Assembly: GCF_902713615.1 (NCBI RefSeq)
Contig: NC_052146.1
Location: 161,434,853-161,498,852 of the forward strand
Source of the DNA: Scyliorhinus canicula
Lineage: Eukaryota
Length of the DNA stretch: 64,000 bases
Direction: 5' to 3'
Within the stretch, counting starts at the first letter, position 1. Each line of letters begins with the position of its first letter. Made by a program: the position numbers and the translations under genes. The notes beneath the pieces are model-generated. The model did no database searches. It saw only the letters and a list, made by a program, of their open reading frames with translations, and was not told where the DNA came from. This document shows, one piece after another, positions 2,816 through 64,000 of this stretch.

Positions 2816-4500
2816 TGCGGGGAGTTTAAAAACCTACGTCGGGGACATGGCTTTCCTTTCAGGAGAGGAGCGGAGACGAGTGTTTGGACCAACGGCATCT
2901 TGGGAAGGTAAGCGGGTAAAACAGTGAATCTGAGGTTTAGACTGTGGGGAGCTGAAGAGTGACGTCACAGGAGGGCTAGTGATTTGATTGGCCAAGAGGA
3001 AACCTGCTAAATTTGAATCTACCTGGTCAGTAGTGGTGACTGGTTAGTAGTTTTTCTTTTCATTTATTTATTTATTTATTTACACTTGTGGTTGTATAAG
3101 TTAACCTAAGGTTTAAGACATGGCAGGACACAACAGACCCATGTCATGCTCCTCTTGTACGATGTGAGAGTTCAGGGACAAGTCCACTGTCCCTGCAAGA
3201 AGGAACTTGCACGGTTCCTTCACGTGCAAGAAGTGTGTCCAGCTGCAGCTCCTGTTAGACTGCTTGACGACACTAGAGCTTCAGATGGATTCACTTTGGA
3301 GCATCCATGATGCCGAGGAAGTAATGGATAGCATGTTTTGCGAGTTGGTCACACTGCAGATAAAGATTACTGAGGGAGATAGGAAATGGGTGACCAGCAT
3401 GCAGAGGAAGGGTAGGAAGGCAGTACAGGGGTCCCCTGCGATCATCTCCCTCCAAAACAGGTACACCGTTTTGGATACTGTCGGGGGAAATGGCTCACTA
3501 CAGGTAGGCAGCAGTAGCCAGGTTCATGGTATTCTGGATGCCTCAGAACGGCTGCAGGACATTCTTCAGGGGGAGGGTGAACAGCCAGCTGTTGTGGTGC
3601 ATATCGGCACCAACGATATAGGTAAAAAATTGGGATAAGGTCCTATATGCTGAATTTAGGGAGTTAGGAGCTAAAGTAAAAAGTAGGACCTCAAAGCTAG
3701 TAATCTTGAGTTTGCTACCAGTGCCATGTGCTAGTCAGAGTAGGAATGACAGGATAGACAGGATGAATACATGGCTTGAGAGATCGTGCAGGAGGGAAGG
3801 ATTCAGATTTTTGGGATATTGGAATCCATTCTGGGAGAGGTGGGACCATTTCAATACCTGGGCAGGACTGGAACCAATGTCCTGGGGTGGGTTGTTTGCT
3901 AGAGCTGTTGGAGAGGGTTCAAACTCATGGGCAGGGGTTGGGAACCAATCCAGAGGGGGCAGAGGGTTGGGAACCAATGCAGGAGGGCAGGGGGTTGGGA
4001 ACCAATGCAGGAGGGCAGGGGGTTGGGAACCAATGCAGGAGGGCAGGGGGTTGGGAACCAATGCAGGAGGGCAGGGGGTTGGAAACCAATGCAGGAGAGC
4101 AGGGGGTTGGGAACCAATGTAGGAGGGCAGGGGGTTGGGAACCAATGCAGGAGGGCAGGGGGTTGGGAACCAATGCAGGAGGTCAGGGGGTTGGGAACCA
4201 ATGCAGGAAGTCAGCGTAGAAAAGAGACGATAGAACCAAAAGCCAGTGGGGAGAAAAATGGAAGGCAGAGAAACAGATTGAACTGCATTTATTTCAATGC
4301 AAGAGGCCTAACGGGCAAGGCAGATGAACTCAGGGCATGGATAGGTACATGGGACTGGGATATTATAGCTGTTACTGAAACATGGCTAAAGGTGGGGTAG
4401 GACTGGCAGCTCAATGTTCCAGGGTACAGATGCTATAGGAAAGATAGAACAGGAGATAGGAGAAGAAGGGGAGTTGCAATTTTGATTAGGGACGTACAGA
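2816..4500 (+). mobile_element. CR1 LINE 5' part: 5'UTR, ORF1 (zinc finger + SGNH esterase), start of ORF2 endonuclease; 3'-truncated
   Basis: ORF1 remnants FTCKKCVQLQLL, ISLQNRYTVL, VVVHIGTNDI, WLERSCRREGFRF; ORF2 start LNCIYFNARGLTGKADELRAWIGTWDWDIIAVTETWL. Confidence 0.9.
3928..4208 (+). repeat. 28-bp minisatellite, about 10 copies, inside the CR1 ORF1/ORF2 junction
   Basis: Unit GGGCAGGGGGTTGGGAACCAATGCAGGA repeated head to tail with few substitutions and no spacers. Confidence 0.95.
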
Positions 4501-11957: not shown

Positions 11958-12507
11958 GGCGGGATTCTCTCAGTCAGGCCGGAGAATCGCCGCGACCGGC
12001 GTGACGCCAGTGGGGGACCGCTCTATACGCGCCCCCCCCCCCCCCCCCCCCCCCGCCGATTCTCGGCCTCAGTTGGGCCGAGCGGCCGCAGCAAAAAACC
12101 AGAATCACGCCGGCACCGTTCTAACCTGCTCTCAGCCGGCGGGACCTCGGCGTGAAGGGTCCGGGGGTGGCCTGTGGGGTGGGGGGGGGGGGGTCCTTCG
12201 TTGTGGCCTGACCCGCGATCGGGGCCCACCAATCGGCTGGTCAGATCTCGTGCTGGGGGCATCTTCTCTTCCGCGCCGACCCCTGTAACCCTACGCCATG
12301 TTGCGTCGGGGCCGGTGCGGAGAAGGCGTGCGCGTGTTGACCCCGCACGCCCAGTTGACGCTGGGATCAGTAGCTGGAGTAGTGAAGGTCGCTCCAGTGC
12401 CATGTTGGCCCCCTGTAGGGGCAGAATTGCTGATCCTGAGGTCATGTTGACGCCGTCCGGAAATTCAACGGCGTCAACACTTAGCCTCAGGATCACAGAA
12501 TCCCGCC
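11958..12507. mobile_element. Harbinger-type MITE
   Basis: TIR GGCGGGATTCT / AGAATCCCGCC, 3-bp TSD CAG, GC/CpG-rich body. Confidence 0.85.
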
Positions 12508-12547
12508 CAGAGTTAATGAGCAGGCTGCTTCTCAGCCACACGCCGTT

Positions 12548-12686
12548 TGCGGCGCAATTCTATCTTCCCGCCACACTTGTCAATGGGATTTCCCATTGTA
12601 ACCATCCCACACGTCCGGGAAACCCGCGGGCGGGAGTGCGCTGCTGGCAGGGAAAATTAACGGCAAGGACTGGAGAATTCCAGCGT
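12548..12686. mobile_element. Small Harbinger-type MITE
   Basis: Ends GCGCAATTCT / AGAATTCCAGC; body resembles 45660-45820 in reverse. Confidence 0.55.
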
Positions 12687-12789
12687 ACCTTTCCAGTCCA
12701 ATTGGAAATCTTCAAATAGTACATGTCAGTTACTGCCAGACCTGGTGAGCTTCCCCAGCACTTTCTGTTCCTTTCTGGTATTGACTCTA

Positions 12790-14700
12790 ATACTTTATTC
12801 GCCCGTATTACTCCCACCAATGTCCCAGGAATGTTCTCGGACAATTCTGAAAGGTTGAAAAGCGGGATCCAGCAGTTGTAAAGGGCGCCTGGTTGTGTTG
12901 GATAAGCGGTTCCATTTTCCATCTCAGCTTTCCCGCTGTGTCCGTTCCAACTCAGTGGGAAGAGCTGGGAACCTCTGTTAAAACAGGGTCGACATTTTTT
13001 TGAACCATCATCAATTATTTGGCCCTCCCGACATTTGCGGGGTTTGTTACTTTGAACCACAAAAGGTCAGGGGATTTTTTTGACCTGGAAGTTCATTGTG
13101 GTCTTTCTCCTGACATGCAATGTTTCAATCATTCTGATTAAATGAAGGAAGGGTGTTCGATCCTTTGCAATCGGTTGTTTTCCAAAAGGGCTAAATTAAA
13201 ATCCAGCAGATTTTATTATTACCGAATCAATACGTGTCGCGTTTAGAAAACGCCAGCATGTGTCAGACACTCGGGGTTGATATTGGAAAACCTCTCGTCA
13301 TTGAAACAGTGATTGTTTGCACGGTAGTCCCGGCTCGATTCAATCCCCCAACCTCGGCGCCGCTGCTGATCTTTCAGTTCATGAGCACTTGGTTCAATGC
13401 AGCGCGAGCGGCGCCAGAATCTAGGCCATTTGCAAAGACATTTGCAAGCGGGAGGGGAGAGAATTGATCTAGCGGCACGATCCATAGCCCAGATAGGAGA
13501 TGACTAGAAGCGATAGTGGCTTTGGCAGCTCGCCGCTGAGCATTAAACGAGTGCCGGCTAACGTGGGAAAGAAGTTGTTGCGAGAAGTGACAGAGGTGGG
13601 CAACTGAAGAGAAAAAGACAACGATCATCAGACTAAACATGGTCTGAAAGGATCTTTTAAAAAATGTTTTCATTAAAGAGCTTTTGCCTTATGGTAGCGT
13701 ATGCGCGGTCCCTCCGTTGTGACGCGGAGTGTGGGGGTCATGTCTGCTCTTGATTAATAGAACAACACTTAACTACAGTGTGTTTATGTGTTTGCCCGTT
13801 GTCTTCTCTTTATCATAGGTGGTCACTCATTTAAGCTTAAGCAGAATGAAAGCAGGCTGCAGTCTGATGTTATGTTTCTGTCTCTCCCTCCCTGTCTCTT
13901 TTATCATAGGGACTCTGGTCCAGGGAGCTGGAACCCTCAGAGCTGTGAAACAGTGAAAACACAAGCAGCACACACTATATGTCTTTGTAATCAACTGGCC
14001 ACTTTCGCCATCTTAGCCCAGAAACCGAGAGATTCGGTGAGTATTGTAACAAAAAATAAAATGCCTGATTGCATATCACACCTACAGGCTGTTTTGGAAT
14101 TCATATTGTCTCATAGGTTTCAGAGATTGCAGTGAGATTTAGCTGATGTGTCTTCTAATAATATCTGGGAAAATAACTAATATTTAATTAATTTTACCAA
14201 GGGTGTTTTGCACAAAAACACCGCATTACATGTTATGTACATAGCTTGATCATTTTTTTAAAATCACGGATTAAGATATTTTGTGCAACATGGTTACACG
14301 GAATTAAGTTTTTTTCTCAACAGTGATCAATAAAGGTTGTTATGAAATTGGAAATGTTTGGCACGTTGCTGGTAGCACACTACGTTCTAACCCCAGTTGA
14401 CCATGAACCTTCACACCTTTAGTGTGTTATTGATTGCCTGAGGCGAGCTGCGAGGCTTGTGGCATTCACGTACAAATCAAATGTTTTAACTTGCAAAGAA
14501 AATGCCGGTGACTTCGTAAAAAATAAAATAATACCATCTAAAATACTTCTGAACGGTGATATTCTTGAGTCAGATGTTTTTATGTTATGACTTTAACAGA
14601 AAGTTGCTGATCAGTAATTTATGAATAATTTGTTTCAGTTTGAAGTAATCCCGGTAGCACAGTTAAACCGGTGAACCTAAGCATGTAACAAATTGGGTCT
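12790..14700. promoter_or_regulatory. TE-free, CpG-retaining island around the GPS exon; candidate internal promoter
   Basis: About 35 CpG by hand count in 13200-13740 at roughly 50% GC, whereas other non-TE stretches here are CpG-poor. No recognisable repeat for about 2 kb. Confidence 0.45.
13910..14036 (+). CDS. ADGRB2: Internal coding exon of an ADGRB (BAI) adhesion GPCR, GPS motif plus Stachel; closest to ADGRB2/BAI2
   Basis: Pyrimidine tract + AG (13908-13909) and GTGAGT donor (14037-14042); phase 2 in, phase 0 out. Translates DSGPGSWNPQSCETVKTQAAHTICLCNQLATFAILAQKPRDS, with W-x4-C...C-x-C and TFAILAQ typical of a BAI GPS. TQAAHT matches BAI2 as I recall it (BAI3 TDASHT, BAI1 LDALRT). 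Family call is strong, paralog call moderate. Confidence 0.88.
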
Positions 14701-25469: not shown

Positions 25470-26081
25470 GGGCTGGATTCTCTGATTCTGGGGCTATGCC
25501 CCCATGCCGGCGTGGGAACGGTGGCATTTTACACCAGAAAAAATGGCATAAAACGACCACCAATTCCCCGTTTTGCTGGGGGCTAGCATGCTGGCAGCGT
25601 AGAGCACCCAGCTCTCACTGCCGATACAGCCCGGAGAATGCCAGGTGTGCGCATGGCGGCGGCCTGCAGAGGCTGCGCCATGCTACATGGCGGAGGCCGC
25701 TCACGGACCTGGCCCGTGAAATAGTGCCCCCCCCCTTTGGTCTGCTCGTTCGCCCCAGGCCAACCTCCCACCGTGCCTCAGCCCCCAATAAAATCCCCTC
25801 CTGCCCGCGGATCGACCCTCCCCGGACTGTGGCAACGCTGGACTGAGTCCGCAGCTGCCACACCGAGTTCCCGACGGGTGAGACCACTCGCGACCAATGC
25901 TGTCGGGAACTCGGCTGGTCGGGTACGGAACATTGGGGATGGGTCTCAGGTAATGTCCTGAGGCCGTCGATATGGCGCGCGGCGTATTTGGCTTTGATAG
26001 GGCAGAGCATTGCGAAAATGGCACCGCCCTGATTTGGTCGGGAGCTTTGATTTCGGCGTCGGCGGTTGGAGAATCCAACCC
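25470..26081. mobile_element. Harbinger-type MITE in LTR
   Basis: TIR GGGCTGGATTCTC / GAGAATCCAACCC, TSD CTT; same family as 45839-46441 in reverse. Confidence 0.88.
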
Positions 26082-26133
26082 CTTATTTCTCATCAAACTG
26101 GCCTTCAGCTCGAGGTTTTGCTTTCAAGCCTCT

Positions 26134-26728
26134 GGGCGCGATTCTCCGCTACCACGCCGGGTGGGAGAATCGCGGGAGGGCCGCTCTGGCACCCCCCGCG
26201 ATTCTCCCACCCCCCCCCCCCCACCCCCAAAATGGCGTGTCGCGTTTTGAGACACGACGCTCGGAGAATCACGGCGGCCCGCGATTCTCCGACCCGGATA
26301 GGCCAAGCAGCCTGCCGTTCCCGACCGGTTCACACCGGCGGCAACCACACCTGGTCGCTGCCGGCGTGAACATGGCGCCAATACCTGGTTTGTGGCTTGT
26401 GGGGGGGCGGAGAGGGGAATGAGTACCACGACCGTTCTCGGGAGGGGATCGTCGGGCCGGCGTCTCAAAGAGACGCACTCTTTCCCCTCCGCCGCCCTGC
26501 AAGATCAAGCCGCCACATCTTGCGGGGCAGCGGAGGGGAAGACGGCAACCGCGCATGCGCGGGTTTGAGCCGTCATCCGTCGTGCCGTCAGCCGCAGATT
26601 CACGGCACGGCCCTCCTAGCCCCCCCGGGGGGGAGGGGGGGGAATAGGGGGCAAGGCGAGGCCTCCGACGCCGTCGTGAACCTCTCCGGGTTTCACGACG
26701 GCGTCGGGCCTTGCGGAGAATTCCGCCC
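26134..26728. mobile_element. Harbinger-type MITE in LTR
   Basis: TIR GGGCGCGATTCTCCGC / GCGGAGAATTCCGCCC, TSD TCT. Confidence 0.88.
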
Positions 26729-29700
26729 TCTATCTTTCCATCGAAAGAGTTGGTCAGTTCTTCGTTATCCTTTCAGGAGAGTGGGTTGGTCGGTTCTGGA
26801 TTCTGCCTGTATATAGATTCATCCAGACTTCCTGCGGGTTCAGAAACACAGAGAGGATAACAGGTCCTTTCCTGTGGAAGCCACGACCAAAACTAAAACC
26901 AAACTCACCCCTTGGAACGCTGAAAAATATTCCAGTGGGAACAGATCCAATCATCACCTACTACTGGGCAGTAAATAGCCTTTTAGGCTAATTCATTGGC
27001 CCCCAGCAAAATCAATCAAACCAAGTCCCAGCCAACCTCTGGCATTGGTACCGGTCAGTCTCCAACTCCAGTATGAACCAGCACAGACTAGCACAGTGAT
27101 CTCTCCTGCAGTTGAAATCTTCTGCTTGAATTAAAGGCAGAGACCACTTGCCTCAAAGACACATGTCCATTAATCATTCACAAATCAAAAATGTAACGGC
27201 AAAAGTAAAAGGGGAAATGGCAAAAGTAAAAGGGGAATAAACAGGAAGGACCCTTAAAAGAGTGAAACTTTGGGGCCGGACGTTTAACTGTAAGGTATGC
27301 AAGACACAAATCACAAACACATAACCTTCCCCAGTGTGCAGGTTTTCTTCCCCGTCTCTACATTGGTGACTAGTCAGACCTTAAAAGCGTGACAAAACAT
27401 CCACAATCATATTATCCTTTCTAGGAATATGTATAATTTTAACATTGAACTGTTGTAATAATAAAACATCCAACAGAATAAACTTCCATTCCGGGGTTTA
27501 AACTTCATTATAAACACAAGCGGATTGTGGTCTGTGTAACTCAAGCTTTGTTTATTGTCATAATGGACATATACTTCAACGTGCTGCAGGGCTAGTAGCA
27601 AGGTTATAACTTCCTTTTCAATGGTGTAATACTTTCTTTGGCAGGTGTTTAGATTTTTCCTGGAAAATACTCCTCTGGCCTTTCTATTCCTGCATAGTCT
27701 TTCTGTAATCACTGCCACTACCCCAAGGTCACTGGCACCTGTTGCCATTTTAAATGGTCTGGAAAAGTCCAGGCAGCCAGAACCGGTTTGTCCACTAACA
27801 TGGCTGTCAATCCCCGAAACTCCACTTGGCATTCTGGGGACCATAGTACTTTCACTTGTTTCTGCAACATGTCCAACATGCATTGTATTTCAGTCTCTAC
27901 CTGAGCCCATCTCCTTGGTTTTAGTTGAGACGGATGTGGCTTTATTGGTTCGGAGTTTATTATGTCCACACCATGAGTAGCTCATAGAGTGCTGCCTGAT
28001 GTTTCCCTGCAACTCTGACTATATTCTTTCTATCTCTCGTGTAAAGCAATTACTTTTCCTGATTGTCAAATTAATATTTAACTGAATTTCAAGGATATCC
28101 TGCAGATAGTATTGTCAATGCTCAGAGAAATATTGGGTTCATTTTTAACCAGTAGACACTCTTCAATCCCTCCATCTTTACATTCTCTCTTTGCGTGCAC
28201 ATGGCTACCTTCAGCAACAAGTTCAGCTGAGGGTTCAATCCCTTCAGACTTTATGTGTGCCATTCTTTGTTTTACAGTTCTTAACTTCATATCAATGTTT
28301 TCATAATCACAATCCTTATCCCCATTTGGCAATACGGACTGAAACAATTTGTGCTTTCCAGATTTCAATTGTTCTTTACTTTCAGAATCAGAGGATGGCA
28401 TGTTATCGGCGCCATAAACTTGCTGGTTGTTTTGACAGATAAGGTGGCAGAACCACCACATGGTGCTTCATCCACCTTCCTCTTAATTTTAAAAAGGGAT
28501 TGTTTACTGATTAGTTCATCTCCTTTGCTGTTTGCTTCCTTGACCTCGAGCCACTATGGACCTTTAAAACGATTTGGGTTAACCAGCTATTCGCTTGGTA
28601 TCACTTCACAGTCCTTACTGCCCTTATCCTGACCAACTGATAGCATGCTATCAGGCATACATTCCTTCAAAGCAGGCATGGGAAATATTTGCATGCAAAG
28701 TGGTTGGCAATGGGTTTACTGCAAGAGGCTTTAACAAATTACTTTTAGTAAAATCCAAGTCACTTTCTTCTTCCAGTATGTTGTCTTTATTCCTAGCTTT
28801 GGAAGAATTACTTGCCATTTGATCAAGATAAGTTAGTGATGGGCTATTTCGTAACAGCAGTTTATCATTATTTCATAATCAGAACCAAAATCAGATTCCA
28901 AATTCTCGTCTAACTCTTCAACGCTGTCATTAATATTAGATTCGGATTCCTCTTTCTTATGGTTACCTTTGGTCTTAAGAGTTCTCAGAATCTGGTTCTC
29001 TACTAGATTTTGTCTTTTATAAATCTCTGTGAGGAATCATTTCCGTAGAGATAAATTCATTAGCATCAGCCAAATCATATTCACTACCATTGTCATTTGA
29101 TATGTGACTAATGTCTGTCAACATTACTTTCGTTGAGTCATTTAATGCCCAGTGAGTTTTCCTAACTCCCACATGCCCTACCGTTAGCATCTCATGTGCT
29201 GTCTGCAGGACTTCCGTTTGACTCTCTATTATCATGGGGAAAGCTACAACTTTCACTCTTGCCTAATTATTCCCCAAAAGTAAGTCTCCCCCTCCGACTG
29301 GGAATTCTTTAAACACTCTGACAACTACTGGACCTGACACTAAATCACACTCCAATTGTATTTTATCAATGGAATTGGGGTGTAATCTCCACCATTCTCC
29401 TTCACAAATATCTCAGCTTTTATTTAGCTTTCTGGAGGGAAAACCAAATCCTTCTCCAGTAAGAAAGTTTGAGTAGCCCCTGTATCCTTAAAAGAGTTAT
29501 GGGTTTGGCTACATCAGTTGAGGGAAAGGGGGCGACCTTCCTCTTAGAAACAAACCTGGCATATCTCTCATCTACCTCATTCCTCACACCTGTTCCAACA
29601 GTAGTGTTTACCTCAGGTCTCCTAAATCCAGTTAAAGTTACAGTCTGCCCTTGTAGTACTCCACTTTTGTTCCCTTTTAAGAATCCTCGCTAAGAACTCC

Positions 29701-51289: not shown

Positions 51290-52300
51290 AAACTACACTT
51301 GGAATACTGAGCACATTCTGGTCTTCATGTTGTAAAAGTGACATAGTGACGGTGGAGAAGGTAGAGAAAAGATTCACAAAGATGATACCCGCACTTAGTG
51401 GCTGTATTTGTCAGGAAAGGTTAAACAGGTGAAAGCTCTTTCTTGAGAAAACAGGGGCGGAATTCTCCCGGGCGGGGAATCGCCCGGGACCTTTGTAAAT
51501 CCCGCCCCCGCCGTGGCCGGAATTCTCCGCCACCTGGGAATCGGCGGGGGCGGGAATCGCGCCCCGTTGGTCGGCGGACACCCCGCACCGGTCGGTGGGC
51601 CCCCCGCGGTGATTCTCCGGCCCGCGATGGGCCGAAATCCCGCCGCTGTCAGGCCTCTCCCGCCGACGTGGTTTAAACCACCTCTGTGCCGGCGGGTGCA
51701 GGCGGTGGGATCGGGCCCCGGGGTCCTGGGGGGGGGGGGGGGGGTGCGGGGCGATCAGACCCCGGGAGGTGCCCCCACGGTGGCCTGGCCCGCGATCGGG
51801 GCCCACCGATCGGCGGGCGGGCCTGTGCCGTGGGGGCACTCTTTTTCTTCCGCTGCCCCCACGGCAATGCACCATGGCGGAGGCGGAACAGACCCCCTCC
51901 ACCACGCATGCACCGGTGGTGACGTCAGCGGCCGTTGACGCTCCGGCGCATGCGCGGACTCACGCCGACCGGCGAAGGCCTTTCGGCCAGCCCCGACACC
52001 AGCCGGCGTGGCGCCAAAGGCCGTTGGCGCCAGCCAGCGGAGCGGGAGCCACTCCGGCGCAGGCCTAGCCCCTAAAGGTGCAGAGAATTCCGCACCTTTG
52101 GGTACGCCCGACCCGGAGTGGTTGCCGCCACTCCGCTACGTCGGGACCCCCACCCCGCCGGGTAGGGGAGAATACCACCCCAGGTCGCTGATTAGTGACT
52201 GAGAAAGTCTCTTAAAATAATTGAAGGTTTTGATAAAGTAGAAACAAATAAAAAAAAATTCCACTTATAGGGAAGTTCAAATCTACAGGTCATAAATATA
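51290..52300 (+). mobile_element. Old CR1 fragment split by a MITE
   Basis: HLEY..FWS..EKRFTKMIP before 51454 and continuation after 52183. Confidence 0.6.
51455..52180. mobile_element. Harbinger-type MITE
   Basis: GGGCGGAATTCTCCC / GGGAGAATACCACCC, TSD CAG. Confidence 0.88.
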
Positions 52301-52302
52301 AT

Positions 52303-52956
52303 GGGCGGGATTCTCTCAGCCCGGGGCTGGGCCAGAGAATCTCCGCGACTGGCGCGGATCGCGCCACGCCAGCAAGCGATTCTCCGCAGAGCGGAGAATC
52401 AGTGCCATTGGTGCAGGCGTGGTTGGCGCGGCACCAATCTGGGGACACTCTACGAGGCCAACCCACCGATTCTTGGTCGGATGGGCCGAACGGCCGTCGT
52501 AAAAACGCCGAGTCCCGCCGGCGCCGTCCACACCTACTCTCAGCCGGCGGGAACTCGACATGGAAGGGTCGGGGGGTGGGGGCGGCCTGTGGGGGGGAGG
52601 GGTGTCTGATACCAGTGGGGGCCTCCGATGTGGTCTGGCCCGCGATCGGGGCACACCGATTGGCGGGCCGGCCTCTCTGGCTGGGGGCCTCATTTCTTTC
52701 GCGCCAGCCCCTGTAGTCCGCAACCGCCAAGTCGAGTTCCCGATGGATGAGACCATGAGAGACCCACGCCATCGGAATTCGGCTGATCGGGGCCGGGCCT
52801 CAGGCAATGTCCTGAGGCTATCGATACGTGGCGTGGCGTACTCCTAGAGTAGGCCGCTTTGGAGGGGGCGGAGGATCACGAATTCTGTCATAAATTTGGA
52901 TTCTCCGGCCGTTTGCCGAATGCGATTTCGGCTTCGGCGACCGGAGAATCCAGCCC
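52303..52956. mobile_element. Harbinger-type MITE
   Basis: GGGCGGGATTCTC / GAGAATCCAGCCC; left part resembles the 11958 MITE. Confidence 0.85.
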
Positions 52957-53341: not shown

Positions 53342-55078
53342 TGAACAAAGAACAAAGAAAATTACAGCACAGGAACAGGCCCTTCGGCCCTCCCAGCCTG
53401 CGCCGATCCAGATCCTTTATCTAAACCTGTTGCCTATTTTCCAAGGATCTACTTCCCTCTGTTCCCCGCCCATTCATATATCTGTCCAGATGCATATTTT
53501 CCATGATGCTATCGTGTCCGCCTCTACCACCTCCACTGGCAAAGCGTTCCAGGCACCCACCACCCTCTGCGTCAAAACCTTTCCACACACATCGCCCTTA
53601 AACTTTCCCCCTCTCACCTTGAAATCGTGACCCCTTGTAATTGACACCCCCACTCTTGGAAAAAGCTTGTTGCTATCCACGCTGTCCATACCTCTCATAA
53701 TTTTGTAGATCTCAATCAGGTCCCCCCTCAACCTCCGTCTTTCCAACGAAAACAATCCTAATCTACTCCACCTTTCTTCATAGCTAGCACCCTCCATACC
53801 AGGCAACATCCTGGTGAACCTCCTCTGCACCCTCTCCAAAGCATCCACATCCTTCTGGTAATGTGGCGACCAGAACTGCATGCAGTATTCCAAATGTGGC
53901 CTAACCAAAGTCCTATACAACTGTAACATGACCTGCCTACTCTTGTACTCAATACCCCATCTGATGAAGGCAAGCATGCTGTATGCCTTCTTGACCACGT
54001 TGCCACCTTCAGGGTACAATGGACCTGAACTCCCAGATCTCTCTGTACATCAATTTTCCCCAGGACTCTTCCATTGACCATATAGTCTGCTCTTGAGTTA
54101 GATTTTCCAAAATGCATCACCTCGCATTTGCCTGGATTGAACTCAATCTGCCATTTCTCTGCCCAACTCTCCAATCTATCTATATTTTGCTGTATTCTCT
54201 GACAGTCCTCCTTGCTATCTGCAACTCCACCAATCTTAGTATCATCTGCAAACTTGCTCATCAGACCACTTATACCTTCGTCCAGATCATTTATATATAT
54301 CACAAACAATAGTGGTCCGAGCACGGATCCCTGTGGAACACCACTAGTCACCTTTCTCCATTTTGAGACACTCCCTTCCACCACTACTCTCTGTCTCCTG
54401 TTGCCCAGCCAGTTCTTTAGCCATCTAGCTAGTGCAACCTGAACCCCATACGACTTCACTTTTTCCATCAACCTGCCATGGGAAACTTTATCAAATGCTT
54501 TACTGAAGTCCATCTACAGCCCTTCCCCCATCAATCAACTTTGTCACTTCCTCAAAGAATTCTATTAGGTTTGTAAGACATGACCTACCCTGTACAAAAC
54601 CATGCTGCTTATCACTGATAAGTCTATTTTCTTCCAAATGTGAATAGATCCTGTCCCTCAGTTTCTTCTCCAACAGTTTGCCTACCACTGACGTCAAGCT
54701 CACAGGTCTATAATTCCCTGGATTATCCCTGCTACCCTTCTTAAACAAAGGGACAAAATTAGAAATTCTCCAGTCCTCCGGGACCTCACCCGTGCTCATG
54801 GATGTTGCAAAGATATCTGTTAAGAACATAGAACAGTACAGCACAGAACAGGCCCTTCGGCCCTCGATGTTAAGGCCCCAGCTATTTTGTCCCTCGCTTC
54901 CCTCAGTAACCTGGGATAGATCCCATCCGGTCCTGGGGACCTGTCCACCTTAATGCCTTTTAGAATACCCAAAACCTCCCCCTTCCTTATGCCGACATGA
55001 CCTAGAGTATTTAAACATCCATCCCTAGCCTCAACATCCGTCATGTCCCTCTCCTTGGTGAATACCGATGCAAAGTAC
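53342..55078 (-). mobile_element. CR1 family A, 5'-truncated ORF2
   Basis: [44 protein letters not shown]; tail with TTCTTTG repeats. Confidence 0.93.
54825..54867 (-). mobile_element. 43-bp CR1 tail-only insertion inside a CR1
   Basis: Matches the CR1 tail at 63505-63550; flanked by direct repeat TGTTAAG (54818-54824 and 54868-54874). Confidence 0.85.
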
Positions 55079-55357
55079 ACCTTAAATTTGGGTTTAAGGT
55101 TTCATGTAGTTCTTAAAATAAAGGGTGCTCAGTGTAACGTTTATGCCATAATGTGTGGATTTTTATTTGCATTGAATGTTTAATGTATTCTTAATTGCTA
55201 GAAGCAGTGTGTGAGAGAGTATAAATCCACAATTACAGTTTTTCTTCAAGGAAAATTGAACAGCTGAGAGATCAAACATTCTGGCTGAAGTTCAAAAGTG
55301 TGACATGTGAGGAAAATCACCATAAAGAATTCAATGAGCAAATTTGATTAATTGGTT

Positions 55358-59307: not shown

Positions 59308-60320
59308 AGTCATAGAGTCACAGATGTTTATAGCATGGAAACAGGCCCTTTTGCCCACATTTGGCCCATATCCCTCTGTACCCAACCCCCCCATGGAACT
59401 TTTTTTTTAAAGGACAAAATTGTACCTGCCTCTACCACTGCCGTTCCAGATGCTCACCACCCTCTGTGTGAAAAAGAATTCCCCTCTGGTCTCTTTTGTA
59501 TACTCCTCTCACCTTAAACCTATGCCCTCCAGTTCTAGACTCCTCTACCTTTGGGAAAAGATGCTCTTCATTATTTTATAGACCTCTATAAGATCACTCC
59601 TAAGCCTTCTACGCTGCAGGGAACAAAGTCCCAGCCTATCCAGCCTCTCCTTATAACTCAGACCATCAAGTCCTGGTAGCATCCATGTGAATCTTTTCTG
59701 CACTCTTTCTAGTTTAACAATATCCTTCCTATAATAGGGTGACCAGAACTGAACAGTGTTCCATGTGTGGTCTTGCCAATGATTTGTACAACTTCAACAA
59801 GACGACCCGATTCCTGTATTCAATATTCTGACCAATAAAACCGAGCATGCTGAATGCCTTCTTCACCACCCTGTCCACCTGCGACTCCAGCTTCAAGAAG
59901 CTATGAACCTATACCCCTAGATCTCTTTGTTCTATAACTCTCCCCAACTCTCGGCCATTAACTGAGTAGGTCCTGCCCTGATTTGATCTACCAAAATGCA
60001 TCATCTCATATTTATCCAAATTAAACTCCATCTGCCATTCATTGGCCTACTGGCCCAATTGGTCAAGATCCTGTGGCAATCCTATATAACCTTCTTCACT
60101 ATCCACTGTGCCACCAACCTTGGTGTCATCTGCAAATTTACTAACCATGCCTCCTACATTCTCATCCAAACCATTTATATAACAAATAACAGTGGACCTA
60201 ACACCGATCCCTGAGGCACACCGCTGGTCACAGGACTCCAGTTTGAAAAACAACCCTCCACAACCACCTTTTGGCTTCAGTCGCCAAGCCAATTTTGTAT
60301 CCAATTGGCTACCTCACCGC
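59308..60320 (-). mobile_element. CR1 family A, 5'-truncated
   Basis: VSKFADDTKVGG, GVPQGS; CR1 tail at 59310-59350. Confidence 0.88.
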
Positions 60321-63499: not shown

Positions 63500-64000
63500 T
63501 ATAGAACATAGAACATTACAGCGCAGTACAGGCCCTTCGGCCCTCGATGTTGTGCCGACCTGTGAAACCATCTGAAGCCTATCTGACCTACACTATTCCG
63601 TTTTCATCCATATGTCTATCCAGTGACCACTTAAATGCCCTTAAAGTTGGTGAGTCTACTACTGTTGCAGGCAGGGCATTCCACACGCCTACTACTCTCT
63701 GAGTAAAGAAACTGCCTCTGACATCTGTCCTATATCTACCACCCCGCAATTTAAAGCTATGTCCCCTCGTGTTGGTCATCACCATCCGAGGAAAAAGACT
63801 CTCACTGTCCACCCTATCTAACCTTCTGACTATCTTATATGTCTCTATTAAGTCACCTCTCAGCCTTCTCCTCTCTAACGAAAACAACTTCAAGTCCCTG
63901 AGCCTTTCCTCGTAAGACCTTCCCTCCATACCAGGCAACATCCTAGTAAATCTCCTCTGAACCCTTTCCAAAGCTTCTACATCCTTCCTATAATGTGGTG
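63500..64000 (-). mobile_element. CR1 family A 3' end, young-looking, runs off the window
   Basis: Open frame RVQRRFTRMLPG..RLRGDLIETYK..RVVGVWNALP; tail with (TTCTATG) repeats. Confidence 0.93.

Follow-up and report, generated by a model that had tools for sequence, protein, structure and literature searches.

Background

The closest described systems to the locus reported here are the adhesion GPCRs of the BAI (ADGRB) subfamily, together with the chemistry by which a GAIN domain cuts itself. In this mechanism, a His at position -2 of the GPS acts as a base and deprotonates the Ser or Thr at position +1, so that this residue can attack the scissile bond in an N-to-O acyl shift (PMC13062082). 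For efficient cleavage, an aromatic residue is furthermore required at the pi-pi position, which contacts the His base and corresponds to F803 in rat L1, L821 in hB3 and S876 in hB2 (PMC13062082).

The GAIN domain of human ADGRB2 has the triad H-L-S; it was crystallised uncleaved and cuts itself with a half-life of about 100 days (PMC13062082). ADGRB1 and ADGRB3 carry R-L-S, in which the Arg cannot serve as the base. Cleavage of wild-type hB3 was not seen in cells; it reached 24.5% only in the double mutant R855H/L821F, which has both the His and an aromatic residue at the pi-pi position (PMC13062082). The same survey shows that vertebrate ADGRB3 strictly retains its Arg(-2), a single exception aside, and that position -2 of ADGRB2 orthologs is shared between His (31.6%), Arg (30.8%), Gln (28.0%) and Lys (8.4%), so that the majority of these orthologs have no base; at position +1, Ala is found in 18.6% of them (PMC13062082). 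For uncleaved receptors, a non-dissociation model has been described (PMC13197933). In the case of BAI3, the tethered agonist is neither required nor sufficient for the neuronal functions of the receptor, and its constitutive exposure blocked them (PMC13322242).

The second line of work concerns a promoter. In mammals, ADGRB1 has a promoter where intron 17 meets exon 18, the exon that encodes the GPS. The short isoforms that arise from it keep the GPS sequence and have no GAIN domain; Iso-seq, reporter assays and knockout mice have all confirmed this promoter (PMC11711277).

A GPS exon with the triad Q-L-A

The window, that is, the whole stretch of 64 kb of shark DNA that was analysed, contains a GPS exon of an ADGRB-family adhesion GPCR, probably ADGRB2, at positions 13910-14036 of the forward strand. 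The identification is based on Pfam and PDB matches, spliced contigs and the dN/dS ratio. The exon has 127 bases: the first one completes a split codon and is followed by 42 whole codons (13911-14036), which encode the final strands of the GAIN domain and the first 13 residues past the cleavage position. On the same strand, a polypyrimidine tract and the splice acceptor AG (13908-13909) precede the exon, and the splice donor GT (14037-14038, within gtgagt) follows it. Apart from the sequence itself, the acceptor is supported by contigs of two sequencing runs, X26 and X27, that match from 13910 on, and by an identical exon start in bird and mammal genomic fragments, while for the donor the same two contigs diverge after 14036. 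Genomic fragments from mammals, birds and teleosts have the same two borders.

The exon is matched by the Pfam GPS profile (PF01825; hmmscan, E = 1.2e-10; score 42.2 bits, cut-off 22.5) over profile positions 11-45 of 45, and shows the pattern of the GPS motif, namely the Trp, the Cys-x-Cys and the hydrophobic last strand. Its residues W7, C12, C24 and C26 align with those of BAI3 and ADGRB2. These two receptors provide the top matches of the exon both in the PDB and among representative proteins; the solved structures concerned are 4dlo for BAI3 (CLCDRLSTFAILAQ, E = 1.6e-11) and 8oek for ADGRB2 (CQCQHLSTFAVLAQ, E = 3.2e-10). We also find the BAI-type pattern C-x-C-x-x-L-x-TFA(I/V)LAQ-x-P-(K/R)-(D/E), and 13 residues lie between the cleavage position and the end of the exon.

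Translation of positions 13986-14021 of the forward strand gives CNQLATFAILAQ (C-N-Q-L-A-T-F-A-I-L-A-Q), with the codons CAA CTG GCC ACT TTC at 13992-14006. The GPS triad (13992-14000, +) thus reads Gln(-2), Leu(-1), Ala(+1). Where the mechanism calls for a His as general base there is a Gln (CAA, 13992-13994), and where a Ser, Thr or Cys should provide the nucleophile there is an Ala (GCC, 13998-14000). The core of the Stachel, or tethered agonist, A-T-F-A-I-L-A-Q (13998-14021, +), aligns with STFAILAQ of BAI3 and STFAVLAQ of ADGRB2. All of this agrees with the original prediction, which had read the same codons and the same peptide and had claimed that base and nucleophile are both replaced while the core TFAILAQ is retained; translation and PDB alignment both bear it out. 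The mammalian triads that it had used for comparison, HL|S in BAI2 and RL|S in BAI1 and BAI3, are correct as well, BAI2 and BAI3 according to the solved structures and BAI1 according to PMC13062082.

Apart from the GPS exon, tblastn searches with sturgeon ADGRB2 and wrasse ADGRB3 as queries found no further ADGRB exon in the 64-kb window. The flanking introns must therefore be longer than 13.9 kb upstream and 50 kb downstream. Over the whole window there was no Rfam match, and an exact look-up of its read-through ORFs in the protein collection returned no match.

The Ala codon in other samples and species

Since the argument depends on a single codon, it has to be considered that the species might normally have Ser at +1, and that GCC might be a rare allele or a mistake of the assembly. 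One observation could be taken in its favour: in X1 (about 5x), the only DNA run among those mapped onto the exon, contigs end at 13981 and restart at 14007, and the resulting hole (13982-14006) lies over the triad. Such a hole could result from a heterozygous site where depth is low, although the hole as such proves nothing. On the other hand, the same organism was sequenced from another sample in another study, and in that run, X7, a contig spans 13873-14486 without any difference. One contig of X26 (organism B) and one of X27 (organism C) match exactly 13910-14036, again with 0 differences. In the X26 contig, 6 and 34 extra letters lie elsewhere, the 6 belonging to an upstream exon that is joined at 13910; in the X27 contig, 122 further letters, past 14036, lie elsewhere. 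As these contigs stop at the exon borders in the way that spliced mRNA would, they confirm both borders and indicate that the exon is expressed. Moreover, all of the sampled exon words (9/9) are present in 18 runs from 8 studies and three organisms (A, B and C).

A more distant comparison is provided by P0001, a relative that is 81% identical in the representative-protein search and whose DNA is available as L001/L002 (Logan SRR17051962/3 and SRR089296). The exon of this distant relative, CLCHQLATFAILAQ, has the same borders, an identical Stachel core and also the triad Q-L-A, in which Ala(+1) is encoded by GCT, a synonymous alternative to the GCC of the window. The two exons differ in 18 of 127 bases and in 8 of 42 residues, which corresponds to a dS of 0.42, a dN of 0.10 and a dN/dS of 0.24. 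The exon is under purifying selection, and Q-L-A is fixed and selectively maintained in this lineage; judging from the alignment, Ala(+1) is retained across a deep divergence (dS 0.42). The original prediction had itself counted assembly errors and rare alleles among the ways in which it could fail, and with X7, organisms B and C and the distant relative all upholding the Ala, we consider this explanation extremely improbable.

Two further candidates were rejected. A pseudo-exon or decaying exon does not agree with the splicing contigs, the dN/dS of 0.24 and an Ala kept across a deep split. A shift of register, with Thr(+2) as the nucleophile, would place Leu at the position of the base.

Predicted loss of self-cleavage

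With neither a hydroxyl nor a thiol at +1, the N-to-O acyl shift cannot start, and no self-cleavage is predicted. That the shark GAIN domain is not self-cleaved is, we think, a sound prediction from the triad. The pi-pi position is the residue before the Trp in CVxWD, 34 residues upstream of -2, and would fall into the preceding exon, outside the window. In 23 of 23 ADGRB2 orthologs it is occupied by I, V, A, S or T, and in one ADGRB3 (Semicossyphus) by Leu; it was never aromatic.

The receptor might still be split near the GPS, be it through strain-driven hydrolysis or through a different protease, and a CTF with an exposed agonist would then form despite Q-L-A. For example, CTF-sized fragments of ADGRB1 and ADGRB3 occur in mouse brain in spite of R-L-S, while being absent in HEK293 cells, and Ala mutants of SEA domains retain residual site-specific cleavage (PMC13062082). 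Against this, the shark triad has neither nucleophile nor base, human ADGRB2 takes about 100 days for half-cleavage even with H-L-S, wild-type hB3 stays uncleaved in cells, and the brain fragments may be products of internal promoters of the kind described in ADGRB1 (PMC11711277). We therefore regard such a cut as improbable.

The view that the domain is non-cleavable, as put forward in the original prediction, is thus chemically sound. It is not exceptional, and a reference set of mammals only had overstated its rarity. Of the rule on which it was based, His or Arg at -2, the His part holds and the Arg part does not, since the Arg in ADGRB1 and ADGRB3 cannot act as a base (PMC13062082).

The triad among ADGRB2 orthologs

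To place the shark triad, we read the triads of the named matches to sturgeon ADGRB2 among the best 120 matches listed. Sturgeon and paddlefish have Q-I-S, whereas coelacanth, lungfish and ostrich have Q-L-S. The triad Q-L-A, as in the shark, is found in neognath birds (at least 49 entries). Gar, bowfin and most teleosts have K-I-S or K-L-S, pike and salmon R-I-S, turtles H-L-S, bichirs H-I-S and mammals H-L-S. No chondrichthyan entry is among the best 120 matches to sturgeon ADGRB2, which reflects the limits of the search and not absence. The same applies to two homologue searches, limited by query length and word matching: region 59-100 of P0001 returned only P0001, and the 87-residue read-through ORF of the window returned no candidate.

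From this distribution, Gln(-2) is widespread and plausibly ancestral for ADGRB2. Ala(+1), as far as the sequences tell, arose at least two times, in the elasmobranch lineage studied here and in neognath birds; the bird Ala has an independent origin since ostrich and turtles retain Ser. Whether Q-L-A is fixed across lineages, a question that came with the original prediction, can thus be answered in two parts: it is the state in organisms A, B and C and in the distant relative, and the other ADGRB2 lineages vary. Both Gln(-2) and Ala(+1) have already been published for ADGRB2, so that the shark state was described correctly and is an ordinary one.

Assignment to a paralog

We assign the shark gene to ADGRB2 as the probable ortholog, an assignment based on one exon. 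The sequence CLCxQL is a signature of the ADGRB2 of lungfish, coelacanth and sturgeon, and the exon encodes 29 residues before +1, as do ADGRB2 genomic fragments; for ADGRB1 we calculated about 34 from PMC11711277.

The gene could also be an ortholog of ADGRB3 or ADGRB1, in which case Q-L-A would break with the strict conservation of R-L-S. The identity of the exon is about 60% to human ADGRB3 and 61% to bird ADGRB2, and is thus nearly the same for both. Furthermore, the exon of the distant relative has TV, ASHTKCLC and AILAQQPR in common with ADGRB3, the downstream intron of more than 50 kb resembles that of the giant ADGRB3 gene, and the validated GPS-exon promoter belongs to ADGRB1 (PMC11711277). 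Set against these similarities are the length before +1 and the CLCxQL signature, the conservation of Arg(-2) throughout vertebrate ADGRB3 but for one exception (PMC13062082), and the pace of change: the ADGRB3 exon is almost invariant between teleosts and human, whereas 8 of 42 residues have changed between two elasmobranch-like species. No ADGRB1-like sequence, with a stalk of the AQLSADA type, stood out among 53 representative matches, which are mostly unnamed fragments and about 24 of which were read fully. On balance, an ADGRB3 or ADGRB1 ortholog seems rather unlikely.

The sequence upstream of the GPS exon

A CpG-rich, island-like stretch lies at 13201-13800 (no strand assigned), a short distance upstream of the exon, and is a candidate internal promoter. 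Its CpG observed/expected ratio is 1.04, as compared to a window median of 0.39, which makes it the second highest 600-base bin in 64 kb. In the distant relative, the ratio is 0.85 upstream of the exon and 0.14 downstream of it. Within the stretch there is a non-coding block of 35 bases (13572-13606, no strand assigned) that is conserved with the distant relative in the alignment (1 mismatch and 1 gap). The intron around this block is about 40-70% identical to that of the relative, which is near the neutral expectation from a pS of 0.32. In X7, depth is zero over 13206-13872, and the contig that includes the exon starts right after that, at 13873.

Taken together with the mammalian ADGRB1 precedent (PMC11711277), the CpG content in both species, the conserved block and the depth gap in X7 might suggest that an internal promoter just 5' of the GPS exon gives rise to GAIN-less short receptors which functionally replace cleavage. 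Such a promoter, which the original prediction had put forward as a transcriptional way of freeing the tethered agonist, would be compatible with an ADGRB2 receptor that is used uncut. Several observations argue against it. The X7 contig reads through the donor without splicing, and further contigs lie in the intron beyond it; X7 is only presumed to be RNA, and contigs do not reveal where transcripts start. X26 (organism B) shows the full-length splice form, with the upstream exon joined at 13910, and the distant relative has ATC in place of the in-frame ATG at 13872. A short isoform would still bear 29 residues ahead of the Stachel and would have no signal peptide, and the neuronal functions of BAI3 do not depend on the tethered agonist (PMC13322242). 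We regard an internal promoter with this role as a lead that is rather unlikely to hold.

A broader version of the idea would be that a CpG-island promoter 5' of the GPS exon is an ancient ADGRB feature, common to elasmobranchs and mammalian ADGRB1, from which GAIN-less short receptors are made in those lineages where self-cleavage is impossible, the Ala at +1 having persisted over a deep divergence in elasmobranchs and arisen anew in neognath birds. Mammalian ADGRB2 would then have gained its H-L-S secondarily, as a triad that looks canonical and has no function. This is speculative, and we hold it to be still somewhat less likely than the promoter itself.

Discussion

The reading that we prefer, with a probability of roughly 0.8, is that the window holds the GPS exon of a shark ADGRB-family receptor, most likely ADGRB2, with a fixed Q-L-A, and that this receptor is made and used uncut. 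Lacking a hydroxyl at +1 and a His at -2, the GAIN domain would not undergo the N-to-O acyl shift, and the receptor would remain a single uncut polypeptide. The uncut state would be the norm of the BAI/ADGRB subfamily and not a special invention of sharks, since ADGRB1 and ADGRB3 have R-L-S, human ADGRB2 is uncut with H-L-S, most ADGRB2 orthologs have no His and the 23 tabulated here have no aromatic residue at the pi-pi position. In the simplest scenario, ADGRB2 was cleavage-resistant already in early jawed vertebrates; with cleavage not in use, the Ser at +1 would have been free to change into Ala. TFAILAQ may have been kept as a buried strand of the GAIN domain and, possibly, as a tethered agonist that acts without dissociation.

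If the assignment to ADGRB2, which is probable, is correct, cartilaginous fishes join the published ADGRB2 orthologs that have no catalytic residues. Shark and bird data together fit the view that BAI-type receptors work without self-cleavage of the GAIN domain and, on that view, the H-L-S of mammalian ADGRB2 is no sign of activity. If there is indeed a promoter at the GPS exon, the short BAI isoforms of mammals would date to early jawed vertebrates. The practical value of these results is small.

Among the known systems, the ADGRB2 of neognath birds is most similar to the shark exon. It belongs to the same family and has the same Q-L-A followed by TFA(V/I)LAQ, the same exon borders and the same 29 residues before +1; the bird pi-pi residue is non-aromatic. 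The differences are the independent origin of the Ala, with Ser being retained in ostrich, turtles, lungfish, coelacanth and ray-finned fishes, and details of the sequence: AIL in the shark corresponds to AVL in birds, and CLCN to CQCR.

The GAIN domains of human ADGRB2 (8oek) and ADGRB3 (4dlo) are the closest solved relatives. The Stachel is conserved in them, and both are cleavage-resistant and were solved uncleaved. In contrast to the shark, where the nucleophile is missing, they keep the Ser at +1, and mutations can push them towards cleavage.

A loss of the GPS consensus is also known from adhesion GPCR mutants that were made cleavage-deficient in the laboratory and from human adhesion GPCRs that have no triad. 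Such receptors can traffic and signal, either by non-dissociation or independently of the Stachel (PMC13197933). They are, however, engineered or members of other subfamilies, whereas the shark change arose in nature and has persisted over a deep divergence (dS 0.42).

Finally, the candidate promoter resembles that of mammalian ADGRB1 in its position directly 5' of the GPS exon and in its predicted short product, which would have the GPS and no GAIN domain. The two differ in that the shark one is known only from its CpG content, its conserved position and a single contig of ambiguous meaning, and probably belongs to a different paralog.

The GPS triad

Among the ADGRB2 orthologs that we sampled (proteins P0032-P0199), a histidine at GPS-2, one of the residues flanking the GAIN cleavage site, occurs in mammals, turtles and bichirs only. 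The pi-pi position, that is, the residue before the tryptophan in CVxWD, was tabulated in 23 orthologs, and in none of them (0/23) is it aromatic. Since the histidine is so restricted and the aromatic residue is absent from all 23, the canonical H-L-S of mammalian ADGRB2 looks secondarily acquired and non-functional. In the shark itself, the contigs of the DNA run X1 leave a 25-base hole at 13982-14006, exactly on the Q-L-A-T-F codons, which may be due to low depth or to a heterozygous site in the individual sequenced.

Repeats and introns

The window is mainly intron, filled with retroelement remains. Decayed LINE reverse-transcriptase-like ORFs lie on the minus strand at 54503-55101, 59548-60313 and 63591-63998. 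At 3900-4310, both strands have an open frame in tandem repeats with a unit of about 30 residues (GWEPMQEGRGLGTNAGGQGVGNQCRRAG-like); this minisatellite-like array adjoins retroelement-like ORFs. A very high-copy repeat occupies 12000-12700. In the DNA run, its summed contig depth reaches values from thousands up to tens of thousands, and its contigs also show numerous variant copies and loose ends. Within the long intron, two further GC-rich stretches, 25700-26800 and 51800-52800 (GC 0.60-0.68, CpG o/e near 1.0), could each be a CpG island or a GC-rich repeat.

The region upstream of the GPS exon

The GPS exon has, directly on its 5' side, a CpG-rich, island-like stretch (13201-13800) with a CpG o/e of 1.04, the window median being 0.39. 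The distant relative with the same exon is CpG-rich upstream of it too (L001, a DNA fragment, 1-520; o/e 0.85, downstream 0.14). Within this stretch, a non-coding block of 35 bases (13572-13606) is nearly identical in the two, with 1 mismatch and 1 gap, whereas the divergence of the surrounding intron is roughly neutral; the block is a possible regulatory element.

Run X7, which comes from an independent sample of the same organism and which we guess to be RNA, has zero depth over 13206-13872. Position 13872 is the A of an in-frame start codon (ATG); one base further on, at 13873, a contig of this run starts, which continues unspliced across the GPS exon into the intron (13873-14486); more intronic contigs follow as far as 15785. 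The start at 13873 could be a transcript start, or else it could be chance. In mammalian ADGRB1, a validated promoter in intron 17/exon 18 (PMC11711277) has the same position as the CpG-rich stretch of the shark.
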